64,000 bases of DNA, taken from sequence record OZ196285.1, one strand, 5' to 3'. This document shows, piece after piece, positions 34,920-64,000 of this stretch. The notes under the pieces are model-generated. The model worked only from the letters and a program-made list of their open reading frames with translations, was not told where the DNA came from and searched no databases. Position 1 is the first letter of the stretch. Every line of letters starts with the position of its first letter. Made by a program: the position numbers and the translations under genes.

Positions 34920-35588
34920 ATGTTAGACAGAAAAAAAACTAATCCTGAGCTTGGAGCTCAAGTTGAAGCGCATCTTAAATCTATCGGGATGCACACGCCG
35001 ACTGTGAATAACGGTCTAACTGATGAACAAAAGCGTGACATTCTTGAAGAAAAGTTCACTGAAATCATGACAACACTTGGTCTCGATCTGAGCGATGATT
35101 CGCTGCAAGATACGCCAAATCGTTGGGCTAAGATGATGGTGAACGACTTAATGGCAGGTCTATCTCCCGATCTGTTCCCTAAGTGTACGGCAGTTGACAA
35201 CAAAATGAACTACGATCAGATGGTTTGTGAGAAAGGCATTAGCGTGTTATCGCAATGTGAGCATCACATTCAGACGATTGACGGCTTCGCGACTGTTGCT
35301 TACATCCCGAAACAAAAGGTGCTAGGTCTTTCTAAGATGAATCGCATCGTCGAGTATTTTTCTCGTCGCCCGCAGATTCAAGAACGTCTGACTGTTCAGA
35401 TTGCTGAAGCTCTGAAATTCATTCTTGAAACTGACGACGTGGCCGTTCTGCTAGATTGCAAACATTACTGTGTGAAAGCACGAGGTGTAGAAGATAGCGG
35501 CTCAAGCACTGTGACTAGTCATCTTGGTGGAGCCTTTCGTAACGAAGCTGATGCACGTGCCGAATTCATGTCTCTTTCAAGAGGTTAA
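34920..35588 (+). CDS. folE: GTP cyclohydrolase I
   Basis: LQDTPNRWAKM, SQCEHH, GLSKMNRIVE.FSRRPQIQERL, HYCVKARG. Confidence 0.97.
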   Translation: MLDRKKTNPELGAQVEAHLKSIGMHTPTVNNGLTDEQKRDILEEKFTEIMTTLGLDLSDDSLQDTPNRWAKMMVNDLMAGLSPDLFPKCTAVDNKMNYDQMVCEKGISVLSQCEHHIQTIDGFATVAYIPKQKVLGLSKMNRIVEYFSRRPQIQERLTVQIAEALKFILETDDVAVLLDCKHYCVKARGVEDSGSSTVTSHLGGAFRNEADARAEFMSLSRG

Positions 35589-35591
35589 TTG

Positions 35592-36965
35592 ATGATAATT
35601 GAATATGTGATGTCAGCGACTGGTCATGCTCGACTAGGTGCGGCACATAAATTGATGGACGTCGTGGATACATCGTATCTGCGCGACATCTTGAACACTG
35701 CACAAGATCTTGATGGTGTACACAAAATCTCAATGCTATACAACGCGTATACTGAGAAGAAAGTGGGACATCAAATCAACGACTTGTTCGGTGATTCAGT
35801 GTACAAGGTACACGTCGATTCTGGTGGTCTGCAAATCGTCAACTTAGGCTTAGAAAATACGCCTGTTCTGCGTAAAGCAGTATACGAGAATCAAGCTGAG
35901 TCGGGTGATATTGGCATGTGCTTCGATGAAATCCCGTTGCACAATGAAGCCAAAGGTGGCGGGGCTGCTCGTATCAACACGAAAGACAAAGTGTTCATGT
36001 ACGATCTAGCATTCGCTTACGGTGCTAAGACTGGTAAGAACATTCGCGCTCAAATCGAGACGTACATCGAGACTGGCAGCGACTGTAAGCCTTACATCAT
36101 ATTGCAAGGCAACTCAGAAGCTGACTTCATCGCGTTCAGTGACGGCATTATGTCAGAACTTAAAGGTGTTGAGCACTACATCGCGGGGTGTGCTGCTGCC
36201 GATACATGTATTGGTAATGGCGTTCGTGAGTCTATCGACATGATGAGCGTTATTCGTAAGCTGAACATACCTGAACGCGCTAAGAAATCAGTGCATATGC
36301 TAGGTGTTGGCTCAGTTAAGCGTATGCTCCCTGCTGTCGCTCTAATGCGTAGTGGCTATTTCGGTGATGACTTTCATATCAGTTATGATTCAAGCACGCA
36401 CACGGGCTGTCTGACGAATCGTGAGTACACTAACAAGGTTGGTGCACGTAAGAAGATCAGTGGTCACGGCATCATGCGTAATGGCATTAAACAGCCGTCG
36501 CGTGAGCTTGATGAAATGCTTGATGAAGTGCATGGTCGTTTCGGTAAGTGTCTGCCTCGTTCGAAAGAAGAGTTCAAAGAGTTCGCGACACGCTTGTGGC
36601 TTAAAGAACTTGACAAAGAAACGATGACTGACGAAGATATTGTGTTTGAAGTAGCGTGTAACTTGTGTATAATCTTATCTCAAGTGAACAACTTCCAAGC
36701 AATCATTTCTGAAACATTCGACTTAAACACGCCAAAAGCTGCTGACTTATCAGCGTTCTTCGGTGCAGCAGTTGAAGACAAGCAGCCTCAAGAGGGCTTC
36801 AAGAAGTGGTCTAGCATTCGTCGTCTTGACGTTCTAGATAAATTGCTTGATGTGAACACGATTGATGGTTATGAACGTTGGCATACATCGTATGTTGATA
36901 GACTCCCGTCAATGCGTATTCGTCGTGGTCTGACTACAGACTATCCCGATTTTAAAGTACAATAG
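35592..36965 (+). CDS. TGT-fold guanine transglycosylase (DpdA/DpdA2-like)
   Basis: VDSGGLQ, CFDE, ILQG, HMLGVG, YDSS; no CxCxxC Zn site. Confidence 0.8.
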   Translation: MIIEYVMSATGHARLGAAHKLMDVVDTSYLRDILNTAQDLDGVHKISMLYNAYTEKKVGHQINDLFGDSVYKVHVDSGGLQIVNLGLENTPVLRKAVYENQAESGDIGMCFDEIPLHNEAKGGGAARINTKDKVFMYDLAFAYGAKTGKNIRAQIETYIETGSDCKPYIILQGNSEADFIAFSDGIMSELKGVEHYIAGCAAADTCIGNGVRESIDMMSVIRKLNIPERAKKSVHMLGVGSVKRMLPAVALMRSGYFGDDFHISYDSSTHTGCLTNREYTNKVGARKKISGHGIMRNGIKQPSRELDEMLDEVHGRFGKCLPRSKEEFKEFATRLWLKELDKETMTDEDIVFEVACNLCIILSQVNNFQAIISETFDLNTPKAADLSAFFGAAVEDKQPQEGFKKWSSIRRLDVLDKLLDVNTIDGYERWHTSYVDRLPSMRIRRGLTTDYPDFKVQ

Positions 36966-36993
36966 CGCCTACGGGCGCTCTTATGAGGTATAC

Positions 36994-37905
36994 ATGAGTT
37001 CAAACTATGATCAAGTGTCTGCTATTGCAGCAGAACATTTAGGCAAGAAAGCAGGTGATTACAGTGATTTCGTCGATATCGATACGGTTCGACCTGATTT
37101 ACTAGTGGCAATTCCGCGTGAGCTGAATCGTACTGACTATGACATCACGAACGATACGTTCTCTGGTGTTGACGTGTGGCACGGCTTTGAAGTATCAGCA
37201 CTGACAGACAATGGTTTGCCAGTATCGGGTATGGCTAAAGTCATCTACCCTGCTAACTCACCGAACATCGTTGAAAGCAAGTCGATGAAACTGTACTGGA
37301 ACAGCTTCAATATGGCTAAGATTGCAGCACATAAGAGTGACGTGCGCAGAACAATCGAAGTGACAGCAGCACATCATCTATCAGAAGTAATTGGTGCTAA
37401 GGTTGAAGTCGCATTCTTCACAGAGAAAGACACACAGCCGCATGGTATGACGGGCTTTGCTGAACTTGACAAGTATGTCAGTGACGCGACAGTGTTCGAC
37501 TCTGAGCAAGGCGCTGAACCTGATATTCTGCAACCATCGCACGTGAAACGCATGAAAGTGTTCACGCCAAATCTGCGCTCTAATTGTCGCGTTACTCATC
37601 AACCTGACTTTGGTGATCTGTACGTTGATATGGGCGGTGAATCGACGCCAACAGTCGATAGCTTGATGCAATACATTGTGTCATTCAGAAAAGAGAATCA
37701 CTTTCACGAAGAATGTGTGGAAATGATTTACAAAGCATTACAAGACAAATTCTCGCCAAGCTACCTAGTAGTTACGGCATTGTACACTAGACGTGGTGGT
37801 TGGAATATCTGTCCGTCACGCGCTTCAAGTTCAGGTCTTTTGCCAGAAGCATTGATCTCGACTCGTGTCTCGCACACTAACGGTAGTTGTTTATTCCGTC
37901 AGTAA
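36994..37905 (+). CDS. queF: NADPH-dependent 7-cyano-7-deazaguanine reductase, bimodular type
   Basis: ESKSMKLYWNSF NADPH motif, NCRVTHQPDF catalytic Cys, FHEEC, YTRRGG. Confidence 0.9.
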   Translation: MSSNYDQVSAIAAEHLGKKAGDYSDFVDIDTVRPDLLVAIPRELNRTDYDITNDTFSGVDVWHGFEVSALTDNGLPVSGMAKVIYPANSPNIVESKSMKLYWNSFNMAKIAAHKSDVRRTIEVTAAHHLSEVIGAKVEVAFFTEKDTQPHGMTGFAELDKYVSDATVFDSEQGAEPDILQPSHVKRMKVFTPNLRSNCRVTHQPDFGDLYVDMGGESTPTVDSLMQYIVSFRKENHFHEECVEMIYKALQDKFSPSYLVVTALYTRRGGWNICPSRASSSGLLPEALISTRVSHTNGSCLFRQ

Positions 37906-37960
37906 TAAGAGTTATGATGAGCATTCAATCGTGAGTGCTCATTTCCTTGAGAGGTTATAA

Positions 37961-38680
37961 ATGAAAAAAGTAGTATCAGTTCTAAGCGGTGGCTTAGACT
38001 CAACAATCCTTACATATACACTAGTAGATGAGTTCGGTGCAGACAACGTGTTCGCACTATCATTCTATTACGGTCAGAAGCAATCAGCAGAGCTTGAGAA
38101 AGCAAAACTGACTTGTCAAAAGCTCGGCATCGAGCATCGTTTAATCGATATCTCATTCTTAGGTGAAGTAGTAGCGCCAGTCTGCGCGAATATCGCAGGT
38201 TCAGACGTTGCAATGCCAACGATTCAAGACGTCCTGGGCGACCCTCAGCCACCCACAGAAGTACCTTACCGCAACATGTTGCTGAACACGATTGCATTCT
38301 CGTTCGCCCAAGCTAACGGCTGTCACGCTGTGTATACTGGCATTCAAGTGCATGATGCATACGGCTACTGGGACTGCACGCAAGGTTTCTTGACTGGCAT
38401 GAACAATCTATCGAGCCTGAATCGTCAACACGAGATCAGCTTAGAAGCGCCATTCGCTAACATGTCGAAAGCAGAAGAAATCGCCATCGGCGTTAAGCTA
38501 GGTGTGCCGTTTGAAGATAGTTTGACTTGCTACGACCCGAACGACAAAGACGAGAGCTGTGGCAAATGCCCGTCATGTTCTGAGCGCATCATGAACTTCG
38601 GCAAAGCAGGTATCAAAGACCCTGCACCGTACTCAGTTGACATCCCGTGGGATAGCATCTTCGCGAGGGCTGGTTATTAA
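37961..38680 (+). CDS. queC: 7-cyano-7-deazaguanine synthase
   Basis: SGGLDST, YGQKQ..E, VPYRN, DCT, TCY...CGKCPSC..R. Confidence 0.96.
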   Translation: MKKVVSVLSGGLDSTILTYTLVDEFGADNVFALSFYYGQKQSAELEKAKLTCQKLGIEHRLIDISFLGEVVAPVCANIAGSDVAMPTIQDVLGDPQPPTEVPYRNMLLNTIAFSFAQANGCHAVYTGIQVHDAYGYWDCTQGFLTGMNNLSSLNRQHEISLEAPFANMSKAEEIAIGVKLGVPFEDSLTCYDPNDKDESCGKCPSCSERIMNFGKAGIKDPAPYSVDIPWDSIFARAGY

Positions 38681-39288
38681 TGTGTGGACTATTTGCAGCA
38701 AAAACAAAGCGTGAGCTTGTCGAACTGGCAAAAAGTAATATACATCGTGGATCGCGTACTCATTCTGTGAGTACGTTTAACGAAGGTCGACTTACTGTGC
38801 AGAAATACAAAGGCTCGTTTGACGCTACGAATGTCCCTGAGACGGCAGATTTCTTCATTGTTCATGTTCAAGCACCGACTGGTACTTCAGCTAAAGCACA
38901 TCCCGCTTCGCTGATCATACACGGTGATGACGTTGCGTATTCATCAAGCGTATGGCACAACGGTATTTTAAAAGATCAATACATGGCGAATCAGACACAA
39001 TCATGGGACTCGCGTCACATAGCGTACGCAGTTGAGTATGATTTGTTCGATGAGCTTGATGGTACGTTTGCATGTTTTCACTTCGCTAGAGGTGTTCTGA
39101 GCGTGTTTCGCAATGAGATTAGCCCTATGTTCACGAACGAAGATACAAATGCGTTCAGTAGCACGAAGACAATCTTAACGCCATACCCAATTGAGCCAAA
39201 TAAAGTGTTTAACATCGACCTGAAGACGTTTAAAATGACAGTCGCACGAGAGTTCAAGACACTCAACAACCCCTATTTCTTTTTATGA
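38680..39288 (+). CDS. Class II (Ntn) glutamine amidotransferase-like protein
   Basis: N-terminal MCGLF, N..RG, H.QAPT, HNG, LDG.FA; TAATG-coupled to queC. Confidence 0.75.
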   Translation: MCGLFAAKTKRELVELAKSNIHRGSRTHSVSTFNEGRLTVQKYKGSFDATNVPETADFFIVHVQAPTGTSAKAHPASLIIHGDDVAYSSSVWHNGILKDQYMANQTQSWDSRHIAYAVEYDLFDELDGTFACFHFARGVLSVFRNEISPMFTNEDTNAFSSTKTILTPYPIEPNKVFNIDLKTFKMTVAREFKTLNNPYFFL

Positions 39289-51696: not shown

Positions 51697-52703
51697 TATT
51701 ATTCACGAGTCTGTTCGGCTCGAAACTGTATGGCACAGACACGCCAGAGTCAGATACTGACTACAAAGCTGTCTACTTGCCGAGTGTGAAGCAATTGCTT
51801 CGCGGTCGAGAGATCAAAAATTCGGTATCGTCTACTGGTTCAGACTTTTCGAAGAATGGAGCAGACGACGAAGACTTCGAAATGGTGCCTGTTCAAGTGT
51901 TCATGCGCGATTTTGTGTCTGGTCAATCATATGCGTACGAACTCGCGTTCAGCGCACTGCAAACACCTGACGAGGAAATTAATCCACGGTTCAAAGCGAT
52001 GTGTCGTTCGCTTGTGGATAACTATTTGACTGCTAACGTCAAAGCGATGACTGGTTATGCACTCAATCAAGCTCAGAAGTATGGTGTGAAAGGCACTCGA
52101 CTCAACAGTCTGATTCAGTTCAACGATGTGCTAAGAAAGCACTATGATGCGAACTTCAACAAGCGTATCGGTGATGTTGAGCAGCTTGTCGATGATCTTG
52201 ATTACTTGACGTTGCAAGACTCATTGATCGAGCGTGTGGCGTATCATGGTCCTAAGACTCGCGACCCTGCGAACTTAGTTGACCCTGCGTTCACTGTGTT
52301 AGGCAAAGTGTTTGGATTTGAAATCACTGTTGCTGATGCGACAGCGCGTATTGATACTATGCTGAAAAAGTATGGGTCGCGTGCGTATGAAGCTCAAGCA
52401 GCGAAAGGTGCTGACTGGAAAGCTATCTCACATGCATTGCGTGTAATCGATCAAGCTATCGACTTGCTAGACAATCATAAGCTTGTGTTCCCGTTACCAC
52501 TATGCGACTTCTATCGCGACGTGAAACGTGGTTTCTACACGTGGGAGCATATAGCTGAAGTCATCGAACAACGTCTCTTAGAGCTTGAGAAAGCGAAAGA
52601 GCGTACAACGTTGCGCCAACACTCGCCAGAGCTTGTGAATTCGTTCTACAAATGGAACGACGAGTGGTTAGATGAAATGTACTTCTCATCGTTCGAGCGT
52701 TGA
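51684..52703 (+). CDS. Pol-beta superfamily nucleotidyltransferase (NrdC.11-like)
   Basis: FGSKLYGTDTPESDTDYKAVY; DWKAISHALRV. Confidence 0.88.
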   Translation: MSEIVLFTSLFGSKLYGTDTPESDTDYKAVYLPSVKQLLRGREIKNSVSSTGSDFSKNGADDEDFEMVPVQVFMRDFVSGQSYAYELAFSALQTPDEEINPRFKAMCRSLVDNYLTANVKAMTGYALNQAQKYGVKGTRLNSLIQFNDVLRKHYDANFNKRIGDVEQLVDDLDYLTLQDSLIERVAYHGPKTRDPANLVDPAFTVLGKVFGFEITVADATARIDTMLKKYGSRAYEAQAAKGADWKAISHALRVIDQAIDLLDNHKLVFPLPLCDFYRDVKRGFYTWEHIAEVIEQRLLELEKAKERTTLRQHSPELVNSFYKWNDEWLDEMYFSSFER

Positions 52704-61938: not shown

Positions 61939-62150
61939 CTCTAACTGATATCATTCAAGCTCATCGCTCTATCATGGAAGCTATCAGCGATATACTTGTT
62001 CTAAGTGCTTGCCAAGAACTCGTACACGCTACTTACGATGATGACACTCACTCTTTCGAATGTGTCGTCGAAACTGTTACACAAAACGGCACTGAAGTAG
62101 ATGAGTTCAGCCTGAGCGCATCACACGTCGAAACTTATATGGGAATCTAA
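61935..62150 (+). CDS. Small early protein, paralog array member 5
   Basis: YDDDTHSFECVV...DEF.L.A..V..YM. Confidence 0.65.
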   Translation: MTLTDIIQAHRSIMEAISDILVLSACQELVHATYDDDTHSFECVVETVTQNGTEVDEFSLSASHVETYMGI

Positions 62151-62151
62151 C

Positions 62152-62334
62152 ATGACTACTATCGTATTACCATCTTACCTAAGTCACGTGATCGTCGATG
62201 AAAACACTATCACCATCGACTCTGCACGCGATAAAGCATTAGTCGTTGACTGGCTTACAAGCAATAAAGCTAAGTTCACTATCACCACTAAAACAATCAG
62301 CCGATGTGTTATACACGTAAAGAGACTCAAATGA
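62152..62334 (+). CDS. Hypothetical protein
   Basis: GGGA RBS. Confidence 0.55.
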   Translation: MTTIVLPSYLSHVIVDENTITIDSARDKALVVDWLTSNKAKFTITTKTISRCVIHVKRLK

Positions 62335-62714
62335 ATATGAAAGGACTGCTGCAACAACTCAATAGCACTGAAGAAGCTATAGCTGATATGTTTGGTCTCG
62401 ATGAACTATGGCATAAGCTAATAGACTGTACTGGCTACAAATTCACATTCAATATCTGTACTGATGATGTTAAAGATGCATATACAATTCGCAATCAAAT
62501 AAGCGAAATCACATATGGCTTTAAAACAATACCTGATATCGATAAAGGCAATTGCTATAGCATTGAAGTATACGGCACTAGTGTATGGTTCGATGAAGAG
62601 AAACGATATGTACTCGTCGTAGCCGACTCGAACGGCGAACAAAACATGTATCTCTTCGACATGCAGAACAACAACAATCAAGAAGAATCAGAATACATCG
62701 AACAACAATACTAA
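62331..62714 (+). CDS. Hypothetical protein
   Basis: ATGA-coupled start at 62331; terminator at 62724-62757. Confidence 0.65.
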   Translation: MNMKGLLQQLNSTEEAIADMFGLDELWHKLIDCTGYKFTFNICTDDVKDAYTIRNQISEITYGFKTIPDIDKGNCYSIEVYGTSVWFDEEKRYVLVVADSNGEQNMYLFDMQNNNNQEESEYIEQQY

Positions 62715-62803
62715 AATAATTTCAAAAAAAGCGCAAATAACCATTGCGCTTTTTTTTCGTCTGATGTACAATAACTGCAAACAAGAGAACAAGAGATTGC
62801 ATT

Positions 62804-62953
62804 ATGCTTATCATATCTTCACTAGTGCTAACACTCATTGCTATAATGATGATAGTACAATCACTAAAGTCATTCAGCTTTATCATGTTCGCTCTAAGCG
62901 CACTTATAGGCTTTATCGCTTATGTTCTACTAGGCATGGGGATGCTATCATGA
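62804..62953 (+). CDS. Small two-TM membrane protein (49 aa)
   Basis: MLIISSLVLTLIAIMM...; ATGA overlap with next gene; not in ORF track. Confidence 0.55.
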   Translation: MLIISSLVLTLIAIMMIVQSLKSFSFIMFALSALIGFIAYVLLGMGMLS

Positions 62954-63120
62954 TCGCACTCACTGTAATAATTGCTATCATGATAACGATTCTTCTGTTC
63001 GATAACTTCGATAGCATTCTCAATAGAACAGAACGACAAATACTACTGATCTTTCTCACTATCGCGTCTGTCATCAACATCGCTAATGTAGCTGTGTTAG
63101 TAAAATATGGAGTATCATAA
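62950..63120 (+). CDS. Small two-TM membrane protein
   Basis: MIALTVIIAIMITILLF... Confidence 0.55.
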   Translation: MIALTVIIAIMITILLFDNFDSILNRTERQILLIFLTIASVINIANVAVLVKYGVS

Positions 63121-63350
63121 TGAAAGCTCAATCTCAACTCACGGCTACTTGCGTCGATGTATGCTCACCGCGTATAGACAAACCAAGCTCAAATGAAACT
63201 CCTACTGGGCTCACTGTTGGCAAAGATTACGTCGTTCACATGTATAACGCCAACAATGATAACAATAAAGCTGAACCAATGATTCGTATCACTAACGATA
63301 ACAATCAACGTGCGTCATACGTCGCTAGACGCTTCAACATTAAGAGCTAG
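63120..63350 (+). CDS. Hypothetical protein
   Basis: GGAG RBS; LTVGKDY.V SH3-like pattern. Confidence 0.6.
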   Translation: MKAQSQLTATCVDVCSPRIDKPSSNETPTGLTVGKDYVVHMYNANNDNNKAEPMIRITNDNNQRASYVARRFNIKS

Positions 63351-63473
63351 TCGAAACTAAGAGCATCGTCGCTTAACACAGCTAACAGCTCTTAGAATCG
63401 CTGTCAGAAGCTCTCAGACGTGATTTTCTATAGAGCAAATGATAATGTTTTTAATATCACGCACCACGCCTCG

Positions 63474-63591
63474 TTATCCACAGCGTGTTGTGTATAACTA
63501 CTGAATAACTCTCAGTGAATTGTGGATAACTTATTGATAGTCTGAGAGTAAAACAGAAATCAGTGGATAAGTCTGTGGGCAATGTGGATAA
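63474..63591. promoter_or_regulatory. DnaA-box cluster (candidate origin or DnaA sink)
   Basis: TTATCCACA 63474(+); TGTGTATAA 63489, TGTGGATAA 63521 and 63583 (-); AGTGGATAA 63562 (1 mismatch). Confidence 0.8.
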
Positions 63592-63786
63592 GAAAATACA
63601 GTTACAGAAATTGGTGGAGTGTCGTGCGCTCCGAGTAAGACAGAATTACTCAGAATAAGTCTAGATTGGCTGCGTTCAGTCGCGGATGGTAGACGATTTC
63701 GAAAAGGCGAAGACCACCCGCGGTAATGTCTAAGCACATCAAACAACATAAGTCAACCGATTCGAGAATGGTAGAGGATAATTGAA

Positions 63787-64000
63787 ATGAAGAAGATAAT
63801 TGAAGAGAAGTCGTTAGAGGCAGAGAAGTGCATCATTGACGTAGGTGAAGTGTACCCATGCCGAGTGCATAGCGGTGGTCACAATTACACTGGTCGTTTG
63901 CATCGTGTTAAGCATAGCGTATTGCCATTGACTGGTGATTTTGCAGCACCGATTTACTTGTTAGAGCATGGAGAGCATGTATCACGCTTGACTGAGTATG
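63787..64000 (+). CDS. Hypothetical protein, 3'-truncated by window edge
   Basis: GAGG RBS, ATG 63787, open to end. Confidence 0.55.
   Translation, partial: MKKIIEEKSLEAEKCIIDVGEVYPCRVHSGGHNYTGRLHRVKHSVLPLTGDFAAPIYLLEHGEHVSRLTEY

Follow-up and report, generated by a model that had tools for sequence, protein, structure and literature searches.

Bacteriophage T4 is the textbook example of a phage that starts its replication without the host initiator, via R-loops and recombination, and the question raised by the locus described here is why another T4-type phage carries a dense array of binding sites for that very initiator, DnaA. The array is found in Vibrio phage F86 (sequence record OZ196285.1, 228,383 bp), in a 437-bp gap (positions 63351 to 63787) of a 64,000-nucleotide stretch, hereafter the window, that comprises positions 62001 to 126000 of the record (in a megablast comparison, window positions 62000 to 64000 matched F86 positions 124000 to 126000 at 100% identity). 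Coordinates below are those of the window. Genome comparisons indicate that the array is real, conserved, and functionally constrained, and they make the module of which it is a part a candidate replication origin.

DnaA boxes in the F86 gap and its relatives

Within 118 bp of the gap, a pattern search recovered four perfect matches to the DnaA-box consensus TTATNCACA, one box with a single mismatch, and two boxes with two mismatches each, thereby confirming all box coordinates (63474 to 63591) given in a preliminary description of this DNA that had been made from the letters alone. In terms of individual sequences, the gap carries three perfect copies of TTATCCACA, one TTATACACA, one TTATCCACT, and two degenerate boxes (Table 1). 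Under an order-3 Markov model, the genome-wide probability of finding four perfect TTATNCACA matches in 120 bp is ∼2e-8. The window contains 4 copies of TTATCCACA (0.43 expected) and the whole genome contains 5, with 3 of them in the array in either count; of the 46 genomic sites with no more than one mismatch to TTATCCACA, 5 fall into these 118 bp, and no other 150-bp stretch of the genome has more than 2. Avoidance of the boxes elsewhere in the genome was not seen: TTATNCACA occurs 14 times genome-wide (10 times outside the cluster) against ∼6 expected. The window has one other perfect TTATCCACA (positions 52013 to 52021, minus strand); it stands alone inside VPHF86_0177, a nucleotidyltransferase gene, and is most probably due to chance.

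Table 1. Sequence features of the F86 gap, from left to right; box offsets are counted from the 16-mer anchor
Feature	Position	Strand	Remarks
Imperfect inverted repeat CGAAACTAAGAGC ... GCTCTTAGAATCG	63352..63400	.	13-nt arms, 85% complementary; directly 3' of the VPHF86_0201 stop codon
Left motif CTCTTAGAATCGCTGTCAGAAGCTCTCAGA	63389..63418	+	CTTAGAAT ... TCAGA kept in all relatives (alignments); longer form ends in TCAGAGC
AT-rich, easily melted patch; candidate DNA unwinding element	63421..63458	.	79% A+T
GC-rich 16-mer anchor CGCACCACGCCTCGTT	63460..63475	+	Most conserved element of the module; near-invariant as CGCACCATGCCTCGTT in all lineages
DnaA box TTATCCACA	63474..63482	+	Sole plus-orientation box; overlaps the anchor end; F86 specific, +14 from the anchor
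DnaA box TTATACACA	63489..63497	-	F86 offset +29; positional homologue of the relatives' +26
Degenerate box TTATTCAGT	63500..63508	-	2 mismatches; F86 offset +40; homologue of the relatives' +38
DnaA box TTATCCACA	63521..63529	-	+61, identical offset in all box-bearing relatives
IHF core consensus TATCAATAAGTTA, perfect	63527..63539	-	Overlaps box +61 (63521)
Four (A)CAGAA(A)T direct repeats	63553..63656	+	Copies at 63554, 63605, 63641, and 63651
DnaA box TTATCCACT	63562..63570	-	1 mismatch; F86 offset +102; homologue of the relatives' +105
Degenerate box TTGCCCACA	63574..63582	-	2 mismatches; F86 offset +114; homologue of the relatives' +117
DnaA box TTATCCACA	63583..63591	-	F86 offset +123; homologue of the relatives' +126
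Right motif GGATGGTAGACGATTTCGAAAAGGCGAAGACCACCCGCGG	63684..63723	+	Common to F86 and the D482 clade

F86 belongs to the KVP40 group of T4-type phages. The preliminary description had already called it T4-type, and this is borne out by the annotated homologues of the T4 core, which include terminase, the gp23-type head protein, gp55, gp33, gp45, gp44/62, RegA, gp43, UvsX/UvsY, gp59, gp32, gp41, gp61, rIIA/B, Alt, and an AsiA-like anti-sigma factor. On the basis of its DNA polymerase, F86 is placed among the KVP40-like vibriophages, with protein identities of 93% to the 6E35.1a/D482 clade, 87 to 89.5% to KVP40, VH7D, QD01, and nt-1, 84.5% to phage 1.081.O, 66% to D479, and ∼43% to relatives of coliphage T4. 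Sensitive blastn searches found unannotated DNA matching the gap in ∼30 Vibrio phage genomes. A homologue of VPHF86_0201 (57 to 70% protein identity) is encoded upstream of this DNA in VH7D, KVP40, and D482 and is absent from nt-1 and CZ01, and a homologue of the small gene VPHF86_0206 is located downstream in VH7D, KVP40, D482, and nt-1; unlike these relatives, F86 has two extra genes (VPHF86_0204 and VPHF86_0205) inserted before VPHF86_0206. By synteny and alignment, the gap is an orthologous single-copy noncoding module of KVP40-like vibriophages, in which the left motif is followed by the AT-rich low-stability patch, the GC-rich 16-mer, and the box array. A search of IMG/VR with the anchor pattern returned chance matches, except for KVP40 (VH7D was outside the loci filtered), and a longer anchor pattern detected only KVP40 and VH7D in IMG/VR and nothing in metagenomes.

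Boxes are present at homologous positions in F86, in Mylasvirus (nt-1 and CZ01), and in a part of Schizotequatrovirus (VH7D, phi-ST2, QD01, and VS2). These relatives carry 7 or 8 boxes each, all in one orientation, at +26, +38, +49, +61, +82, +105, +117, and +126 from the 16-mer, so that successive boxes start 12, 11, 12, 21, 23, 12, and 9 bp apart, i.e., at 9 to 12 bp inside the subarrays and at 21 to 23 bp between them. F86 has good boxes at the homologous offsets +29, +61, +102, and +123, degenerate ones at +40 and +114, and an additional inverted perfect box at +14, where the alignment shows weaker box-like words in nt-1 (TTTTCTACA) and VH7D (AAATGCACA). Since the relatives carry good boxes in the same places, the two weak boxes of F86 (63500 and 63574) are best described as decayed homologues of real boxes.

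When the alignment columns were counted over three lineages (nt-1, VH7D, and QD01), 59 of the 64 specified box positions proved to be invariant, compared to 22 of the 52 spacer positions (Fisher's test, p=4e-9) and to only 4 of the 8 fifth positions, which the consensus leaves unspecified as N (p=0.007). The boxes take the forms TTATCCACA, TTATACACA, and TTATGCACA, precisely the range that the classical consensus permits. Judged by these substitutions, the array is under purifying selection that tracks the DnaA consensus position by position, and because this selection mirrors TTATNCACA, the array can be considered a functional protein-binding one. This pattern is also the strongest evidence that the boxes would be bound by DnaA or by a protein of the same specificity.

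The two alternatives to DnaA binding can be weighed at this point. Short motifs do recur, and nothing further speaks for a chance cluster or for an inert remnant of captured host DNA; with the Markov estimate given above, box positions that stayed invariant while the spacers and the flanking proteins diverged, and no homology to Escherichia coli oriC, such an origin of the array is extremely improbable. The second alternative, namely, that a DNA-binding protein of the phage itself has by coincidence the specificity TTATNCACA and that host DnaA plays no part, appears improbable as well. It would suit the lack of assigned functions for most genes around the module, the conservation of the flanks in phages that have no boxes, and the presence of a different repeat in the same slot of sister phages (see below), as expected of lineage-specific binders. 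However, the boxes agree exactly with the DnaA consensus, with tolerance at position 5 only, and three perfect highest-affinity boxes would bind host DnaA anyway. Nor could any DnaA be found in the phage itself: tblastn searches of F86 with E. coli DnaA and with its domain IV gave best E-values of 1 to 2, the weakly matched protein had no Pfam match, and a phage-encoded DnaA was rejected on these grounds.

A candidate DnaA-assisted origin

The box array is accompanied by a flank whose physical properties are conserved. The AT-rich stretch to the left of the boxes, which the preliminary description had pointed out, is indeed among the least stable DNA of the window, its 30-mers ranking in the lowest 0.4 to 1.7%, and the 30-mer directly after it, which covers the anchor, is at the 98.8th percentile of stability. 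In F86, nt-1, VH7D, QD01, KVP40, and D482, the least stable 25-mer, which belongs to the bottom 0.3 to 3% of its locus, is found 24 to 28 bp before the anchor on the left side; this offset is kept in QD01 despite its differing sequence and also in the lineages that have no boxes. The anchor is unique in the F86 genome even with 3 mismatches permitted, and the core of the right motif (ATTTCGAAAAGGCG) is unique as well. A single copy each of the anchor, the left motif, and the right motif is present in the 228 kb, which indicates that they are not general promoter, terminator, or other transcription signals.

We tentatively propose that the array and its flank form an origin at which DnaA assists phage replication and in which the boxes are an auxiliary part, and put the likelihood of this assignment slightly short of even. 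We infer that host DnaA, and not another protein, would bind the strong boxes and oligomerize along the array; that the resulting filament would stop at the GC clamp and help open the adjoining AT-rich patch; and that either the phage replisome (the gp59/gp41/gp61 homologues) or host DnaB would then be loaded at the opened patch. Early origin-dependent replication would begin at the module, and recombination-dependent replication would take over later.

Several observations speak against this proposal. Boxes are missing from some of the phages in which the module is found: KVP40, VH1_2019, and PVA8 have kept the flanks (∼65% identical to those of VH7D) and no box, and their box columns are conserved no better than the spacers (31 of 64 versus 28 of 52, p=0.58); the 6E35.1a/D482 clade, which is the closest to F86, has no boxes at all; and in D479, the syntenic place does not contain the module. 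Thus, as far as natural variation tells, the boxes are dispensable. The AT-rich patch is short (25 to 38 bp), the 437-bp gap contains no GATC (∼1.3 expected), and neither a GC-skew feature nor a change of gene orientation marks the locus. The GC skew of F86 follows the polarity of transcription, with a maximum at 166.7 kb, and since skew tracks transcription in T4-type phages, it is uninformative on the origin here. Beyond the boxes, no homology was found to oriC of E. coli, the only oriC compared, and we know of no hand-over from a DnaA-opened bubble to a T4-type replisome. Finally, for a similar cluster in T5-like phages, an origin role has been judged unlikely (10.1101/866236).

The losses themselves have some structure. 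In 18 records of the 6E35.1a/D482 clade, the same intergenic slot is occupied by eight perfect tandem copies of the 10-mer ACAGCCAAGA, an iteron-like array (positions ∼129433 to 129512 of the D482 record, OZ195769.1), next to the 16-mer, the AT-rich run, and the right-hand motif (ATTTCGAAAAGGC...) that this clade retains in common with F86. The boxes thus give the impression of an auxiliary component: the KVP40 species shows them decayed, and in the 6E35.1a/D482 clade another repeat has taken their place, with the flanks still present in both. The simplest history is that of an ancestral array followed by at least two losses (in the KVP40 species and in the 6E35.1a clade). Conservation in relatives, which the preliminary description had named as a check on its proposals, therefore holds for the fixed boxes of VH7D, phi-ST2, QD01, VS2, nt-1, and CZ01 and fails for the KVP40 species and the 6E35.1a clade. 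It is possible, rather than probable, that the whole KVP40-like group (F86 and at least two genera) uses host DnaA to fire an early origin dedicated to this purpose, which was lost at least twice. The DnaA filament on the one-way eight-box array would in that case open the unwinding element for the gp59/gp41 machinery, and in the lineages without the array, other repeats or another mechanism could, with the same degree of confidence, have replaced it.

Two features of T4 replication bear on this proposal. T4 origins have no common motif and are individually dispensable, so natural loss of the boxes would be tolerable, and T4 origin sequences are not shared by its relatives (PMC3016281). Furthermore, KVP40 and nt-1 have no recognizable motA (PMC2988021), and the T4 origins oriF and oriG depend on MotA promoters (PMC3016281), which leaves room for an origin of a non-T4 type.

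The preliminary description had offered two functions for the cluster, a host-DnaA-assisted phage origin and a datA-like sink. The first fits the anatomy of the module better: a conserved low-stability patch and GC clamp adjoin one side of a head-to-tail array, the module is present in a single copy, and iteron-like repeats occupy the same slot in sister phages. A role as a DnaA sink or tether, with no part in phage initiation, seems unlikely by comparison of the sequences. The array could in that case titrate host DnaA as phage copies build up, in the manner of datA, and so block new rounds of initiation at host oriC, or it could tie phage DNA to membrane-bound DnaA, as has been proposed for the injection-stop region of T5. 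The 5 to 8 strong boxes per genome, multiplied by the phage copy number, would serve such a purpose, and natural loss in some lineages suits an accessory function. However, a sink does not require fixed spacing, a single orientation, or an adjoining unwinding-prone patch, and T4-type phages have other means of host shut-off (homologues of Alt and of a host transcription inhibitor are annotated in F86). Like the module, the datA and DARS1/2 elements of E. coli are DnaA-box clusters that are not part of oriC; their target is the DnaA pool. They have few boxes in mixed orientation and are IHF dependent, whereas the phage module is a long one-way array with a conserved flank resembling a DNA unwinding element (DUE), and the IHF site that datA needs is found in F86 only.

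Comparison with known origins and DnaA-box clusters

The closest precedent in a virulent phage comes from T5-like phages. The preliminary description had considered either function unexpected in this phage family, fairly so: no report linking DnaA boxes to T4-type phages was found in the literature searched, and a review of T4 initiation does not mention DnaA. The comparable cluster is in the injection-stop (iss) region, which lies in the left terminal repeat of T5-like phages, a conserved untranslated stretch with ∼8 consensus or near-consensus DnaA boxes, whose pairs lie 3 bp apart and which form two inverted-repeat units (IRC and IRD) with 52-bp spacers (Davison 2020, 10.1101/866236). That cluster has been proposed to bind membrane DnaA, with its function unproven and an origin role argued to be unlikely (10.1101/866236). 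The two arrays share a virulent phage background, a conserved untranslated cluster of ∼8 boxes, and pairs 3 bp apart (starts at 12 bp in the vibriophages), and blastn searches with the nt-1 array yielded short matches that touch T5-type terminal repeats. In contrast to the T5 boxes, those of the vibriophage module are head to tail (with one inverted box, in F86 only), adjoin a DUE-like patch, and are internal to the genome. We also infer that a T5-like injection stop is unlikely in a circularly permuted T4-type genome that has no fixed order of entry.

The designation "oriC-like" used in the preliminary description is apt for the architecture and not for the ancestry. As in E. coli oriC, an AT-rich unwinding-prone stretch is followed by boxes reading TGTGNATAA on the same strand, in the order of the DUE, R1, and R5M, and the boxes, with high-affinity TTATCCACA boxes among them, run head to tail at about one helical turn, an arrangement that is reported to guide DnaA oligomers. 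Rozgaja et al. (2011) reportedly found an 11-bp phasing of the low-affinity sites. Unlike oriC, the module has no GATC/SeqA sites, no opposite right-half array, and no conserved IHF site; its AT-rich patch is shorter, its bearer is a lytic phage with replisome genes of its own, and sequence homology ends at the boxes. Capture of a host oriC was considered and rejected, as alignment with E. coli oriC yielded one box only, with a score inside the shuffle range; a match to the ATCGCAC upstream of R1 is tempting and not significant.

Plasmid and prophage-type origins such as P1 oriR, pSC101, F oriS, and RK2 oriV combine DnaA boxes and an AT-rich region with a second class of repeats, and in them the boxes are auxiliary and can be lost. 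The phage module has a similar combination of DnaA boxes, an AT-rich patch, and candidate second repeats, but differs from the P1 oriR/pSC101 type in that no recognizable Rep or initiator gene is encoded next to it. The candidate repeats are the CAGAA(A)T elements that the preliminary description had noticed to the right of the boxes; they are real and locally enriched, as 4 of the 29 plus-strand copies of the window fall within ∼100 bp (corrected P ∼2e-4, for a pattern picked post hoc). Being short and weakly supported, they are possible iterons of a second repeat class.

The module and the oriE, oriF, and oriG origins of T4 belong to the same phage family, and each is a noncoding element; the likeness extends to a repeat cluster, an AT-rich unwinding-prone part, and, in some relatives, a nearby sigma-70-type early promoter. 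In T4, oriE consists of a direct-repeat cluster of 12-nt iterons, whose role is unproven, and an early promoter, whereas oriF and oriG consist of a MotA-dependent middle promoter and a downstream unwinding element (PMC3016281). The repeats of the vibriophage module differ in being host DnaA boxes instead of phage iterons. The promoters also differ in placement. A scan for the sigma-70 consensus, the only promoter type covered, detected no promoter on either strand of the F86 gap, no early-type promoter in the gap of F86 or nt-1, and no promoter reading into the AT-rich patch in F86, VH7D, or nt-1; R-loop priming of the oriF/oriG type is thus unsupported. The Schizotequatrovirus relatives have a conserved sigma-70-type promoter, TTGACA-18-(TG)GAGAAT, ∼110 bp to the right of the last box and pointing away from the array. 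It is found at homologous positions in KVP40, QD01, VS2, and phi-ST2, and in VH7D it is the only strong promoter and points away from the AT-rich patch. These relatives also have a conserved CTCATCGGCTCCTGTGT motif to the right of the array, and both the motif and the promoter are absent from F86.

This layout raises the possibility that the array is a DnaA-dependent transcription element, at which bound DnaA either stops or insulates transcription between the upstream run of early genes and the unit that follows or modulates the neighboring promoter. Such a function appears rather unlikely to us; if it were correct, expression of the downstream early genes would track the DnaA status of the host. 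The array is located between two plus-strand gene runs, and because F86, VH7D, and nt-1 have no called intrinsic terminator in the interval from the upstream gene to the array, transcripts probably continue into the boxes. With respect to transcription, the eight boxes all point the same way, and DnaA/box complexes reportedly block RNA polymerase in an orientation-dependent manner, as described for asnC by Schaefer and Messer. The downstream promoter of Schizotequatrovirus could be the target of modulation, but it is too distant from the boxes for simple occlusion and has no counterpart in F86 or nt-1. Moreover, a transcription element leaves unexplained why a low-stability patch and a GC anchor are conserved at the opposite side of the array, as well as the single copy of the module in a genome with many early transcription units.

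The module gives the KVP40-like vibriophages a concrete and easily testable candidate origin, and Vibrio natriegens, a fast-growing laboratory species, is the host of one of its bearers, nt-1. Use of DnaA, if real, would be a new host dependency for the T4-type family, one undescribed in Straboviridae, with a bearing on host range and on the coupling of infection success to the growth state of the host, and the sister lineages that have lost the boxes would constitute a natural experiment. If the array is a sink or tether instead, it would be the second case, beside the T5 cluster, of virulent phages keeping DnaA-box arrays and would point to a more general use of DnaA by phages.

Further examples of box arrays were seen outside this group. 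In bajarodmic virus 581 (Microviridae, PQ006781.1), four perfect head-to-tail copies of TGTGGATAA, spaced 12, 12, and 11 bp (positions 415 to 460 of the stretch examined), start in the last bases of the replication initiator gene, pass its stop codon, and are followed by an AT-rich stretch. A box-pair pattern search found tandem TGTGGATAA-GTC-TGTGGATAA pairs, with the same GTC spacer, in unrelated IMG/VR viral contigs, some of them apparently inside genes. The use of DnaA-box arrays by phages may be wider than described.

Coding potential and other features of the locus

The gap is embedded in a long run of small plus-strand genes. The proteins encoded on both sides of the module have no Pfam match and belong to PHROG families without an assigned function. 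The deposited annotation places two minus-strand coding sequences across the gap, VPHF86_0202 (63457 to 63582) and VPHF86_0203 (63650 to 63739). However, no open reading frame over the array is conserved in the relatives, where open frames vary in extent and frame, so these two genes look spurious and the stretch is effectively noncoding, as the preliminary description had stated; a coding role of the array was rejected for the same reason. An RNA reading was rejected too: ARAGORN detected no tRNA in the window, no Rfam family was found in positions 63200 to 63900 at permissive thresholds, and RNAalifold showed no conserved structure in the left flank across the relatives and only a weak stem with almost no covariation, spanning the promoter, in the right flank. 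The inverted repeat that follows VPHF86_0201 has no T-run after it and was not called as a terminator, and the F86 gap as a whole gave no intrinsic terminator call either. The perfect IHF core at the array is one of 7 in the window and is seen in none of the 8 relatives; because it is not conserved, this site carries little weight.

The independently deposited records of several relatives, namely, R10Z (MT612988.1), PVA23 (ON190025.1), PVA8, PC-Liy1, and R11Z, are linearized inside the module, 30 to 60 bp upstream of the TTGACA promoter. A genome terminus or pac site was considered and rejected, as in the two related records checked, the record ends have no terminal repeat and join seamlessly. 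Linearization inside the gap is probably due to assembly or to the authors' choice.

F86 encodes two queC-like proteins, a queE-like protein, and GTP cyclohydrolase. The genes for GTP cyclohydrolase and a QueC-like protein are located at positions 34920 to 39288 of the window, and further genes of the 7-deazaguanine (que) type are found outside it, at positions 136546 to 137247 and 160347 to 161216 of the record. This gene set suggests 7-deazaguanine modification of F86 DNA, which could influence how well the box strand that contains G is recognized. In nt-1, deazaguanine replaces only ∼0.1 to 0.2% of G (PMC6884629), and a modification that blocks DnaA was rejected on this account. Given this low content and the absence of dCMP hydroxymethylase and glucosyltransferase from the F86 annotations, the boxes should be readable by DnaA. 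Paralogous gene families, to which the inserted genes VPHF86_0204 and VPHF86_0205 belong, follow the module in F86 (three members of phrog_13976 and two of phrog_4354) at positions 125787 to 128504 of the record, the first 213 bases of which are window positions 63788 to 64000.

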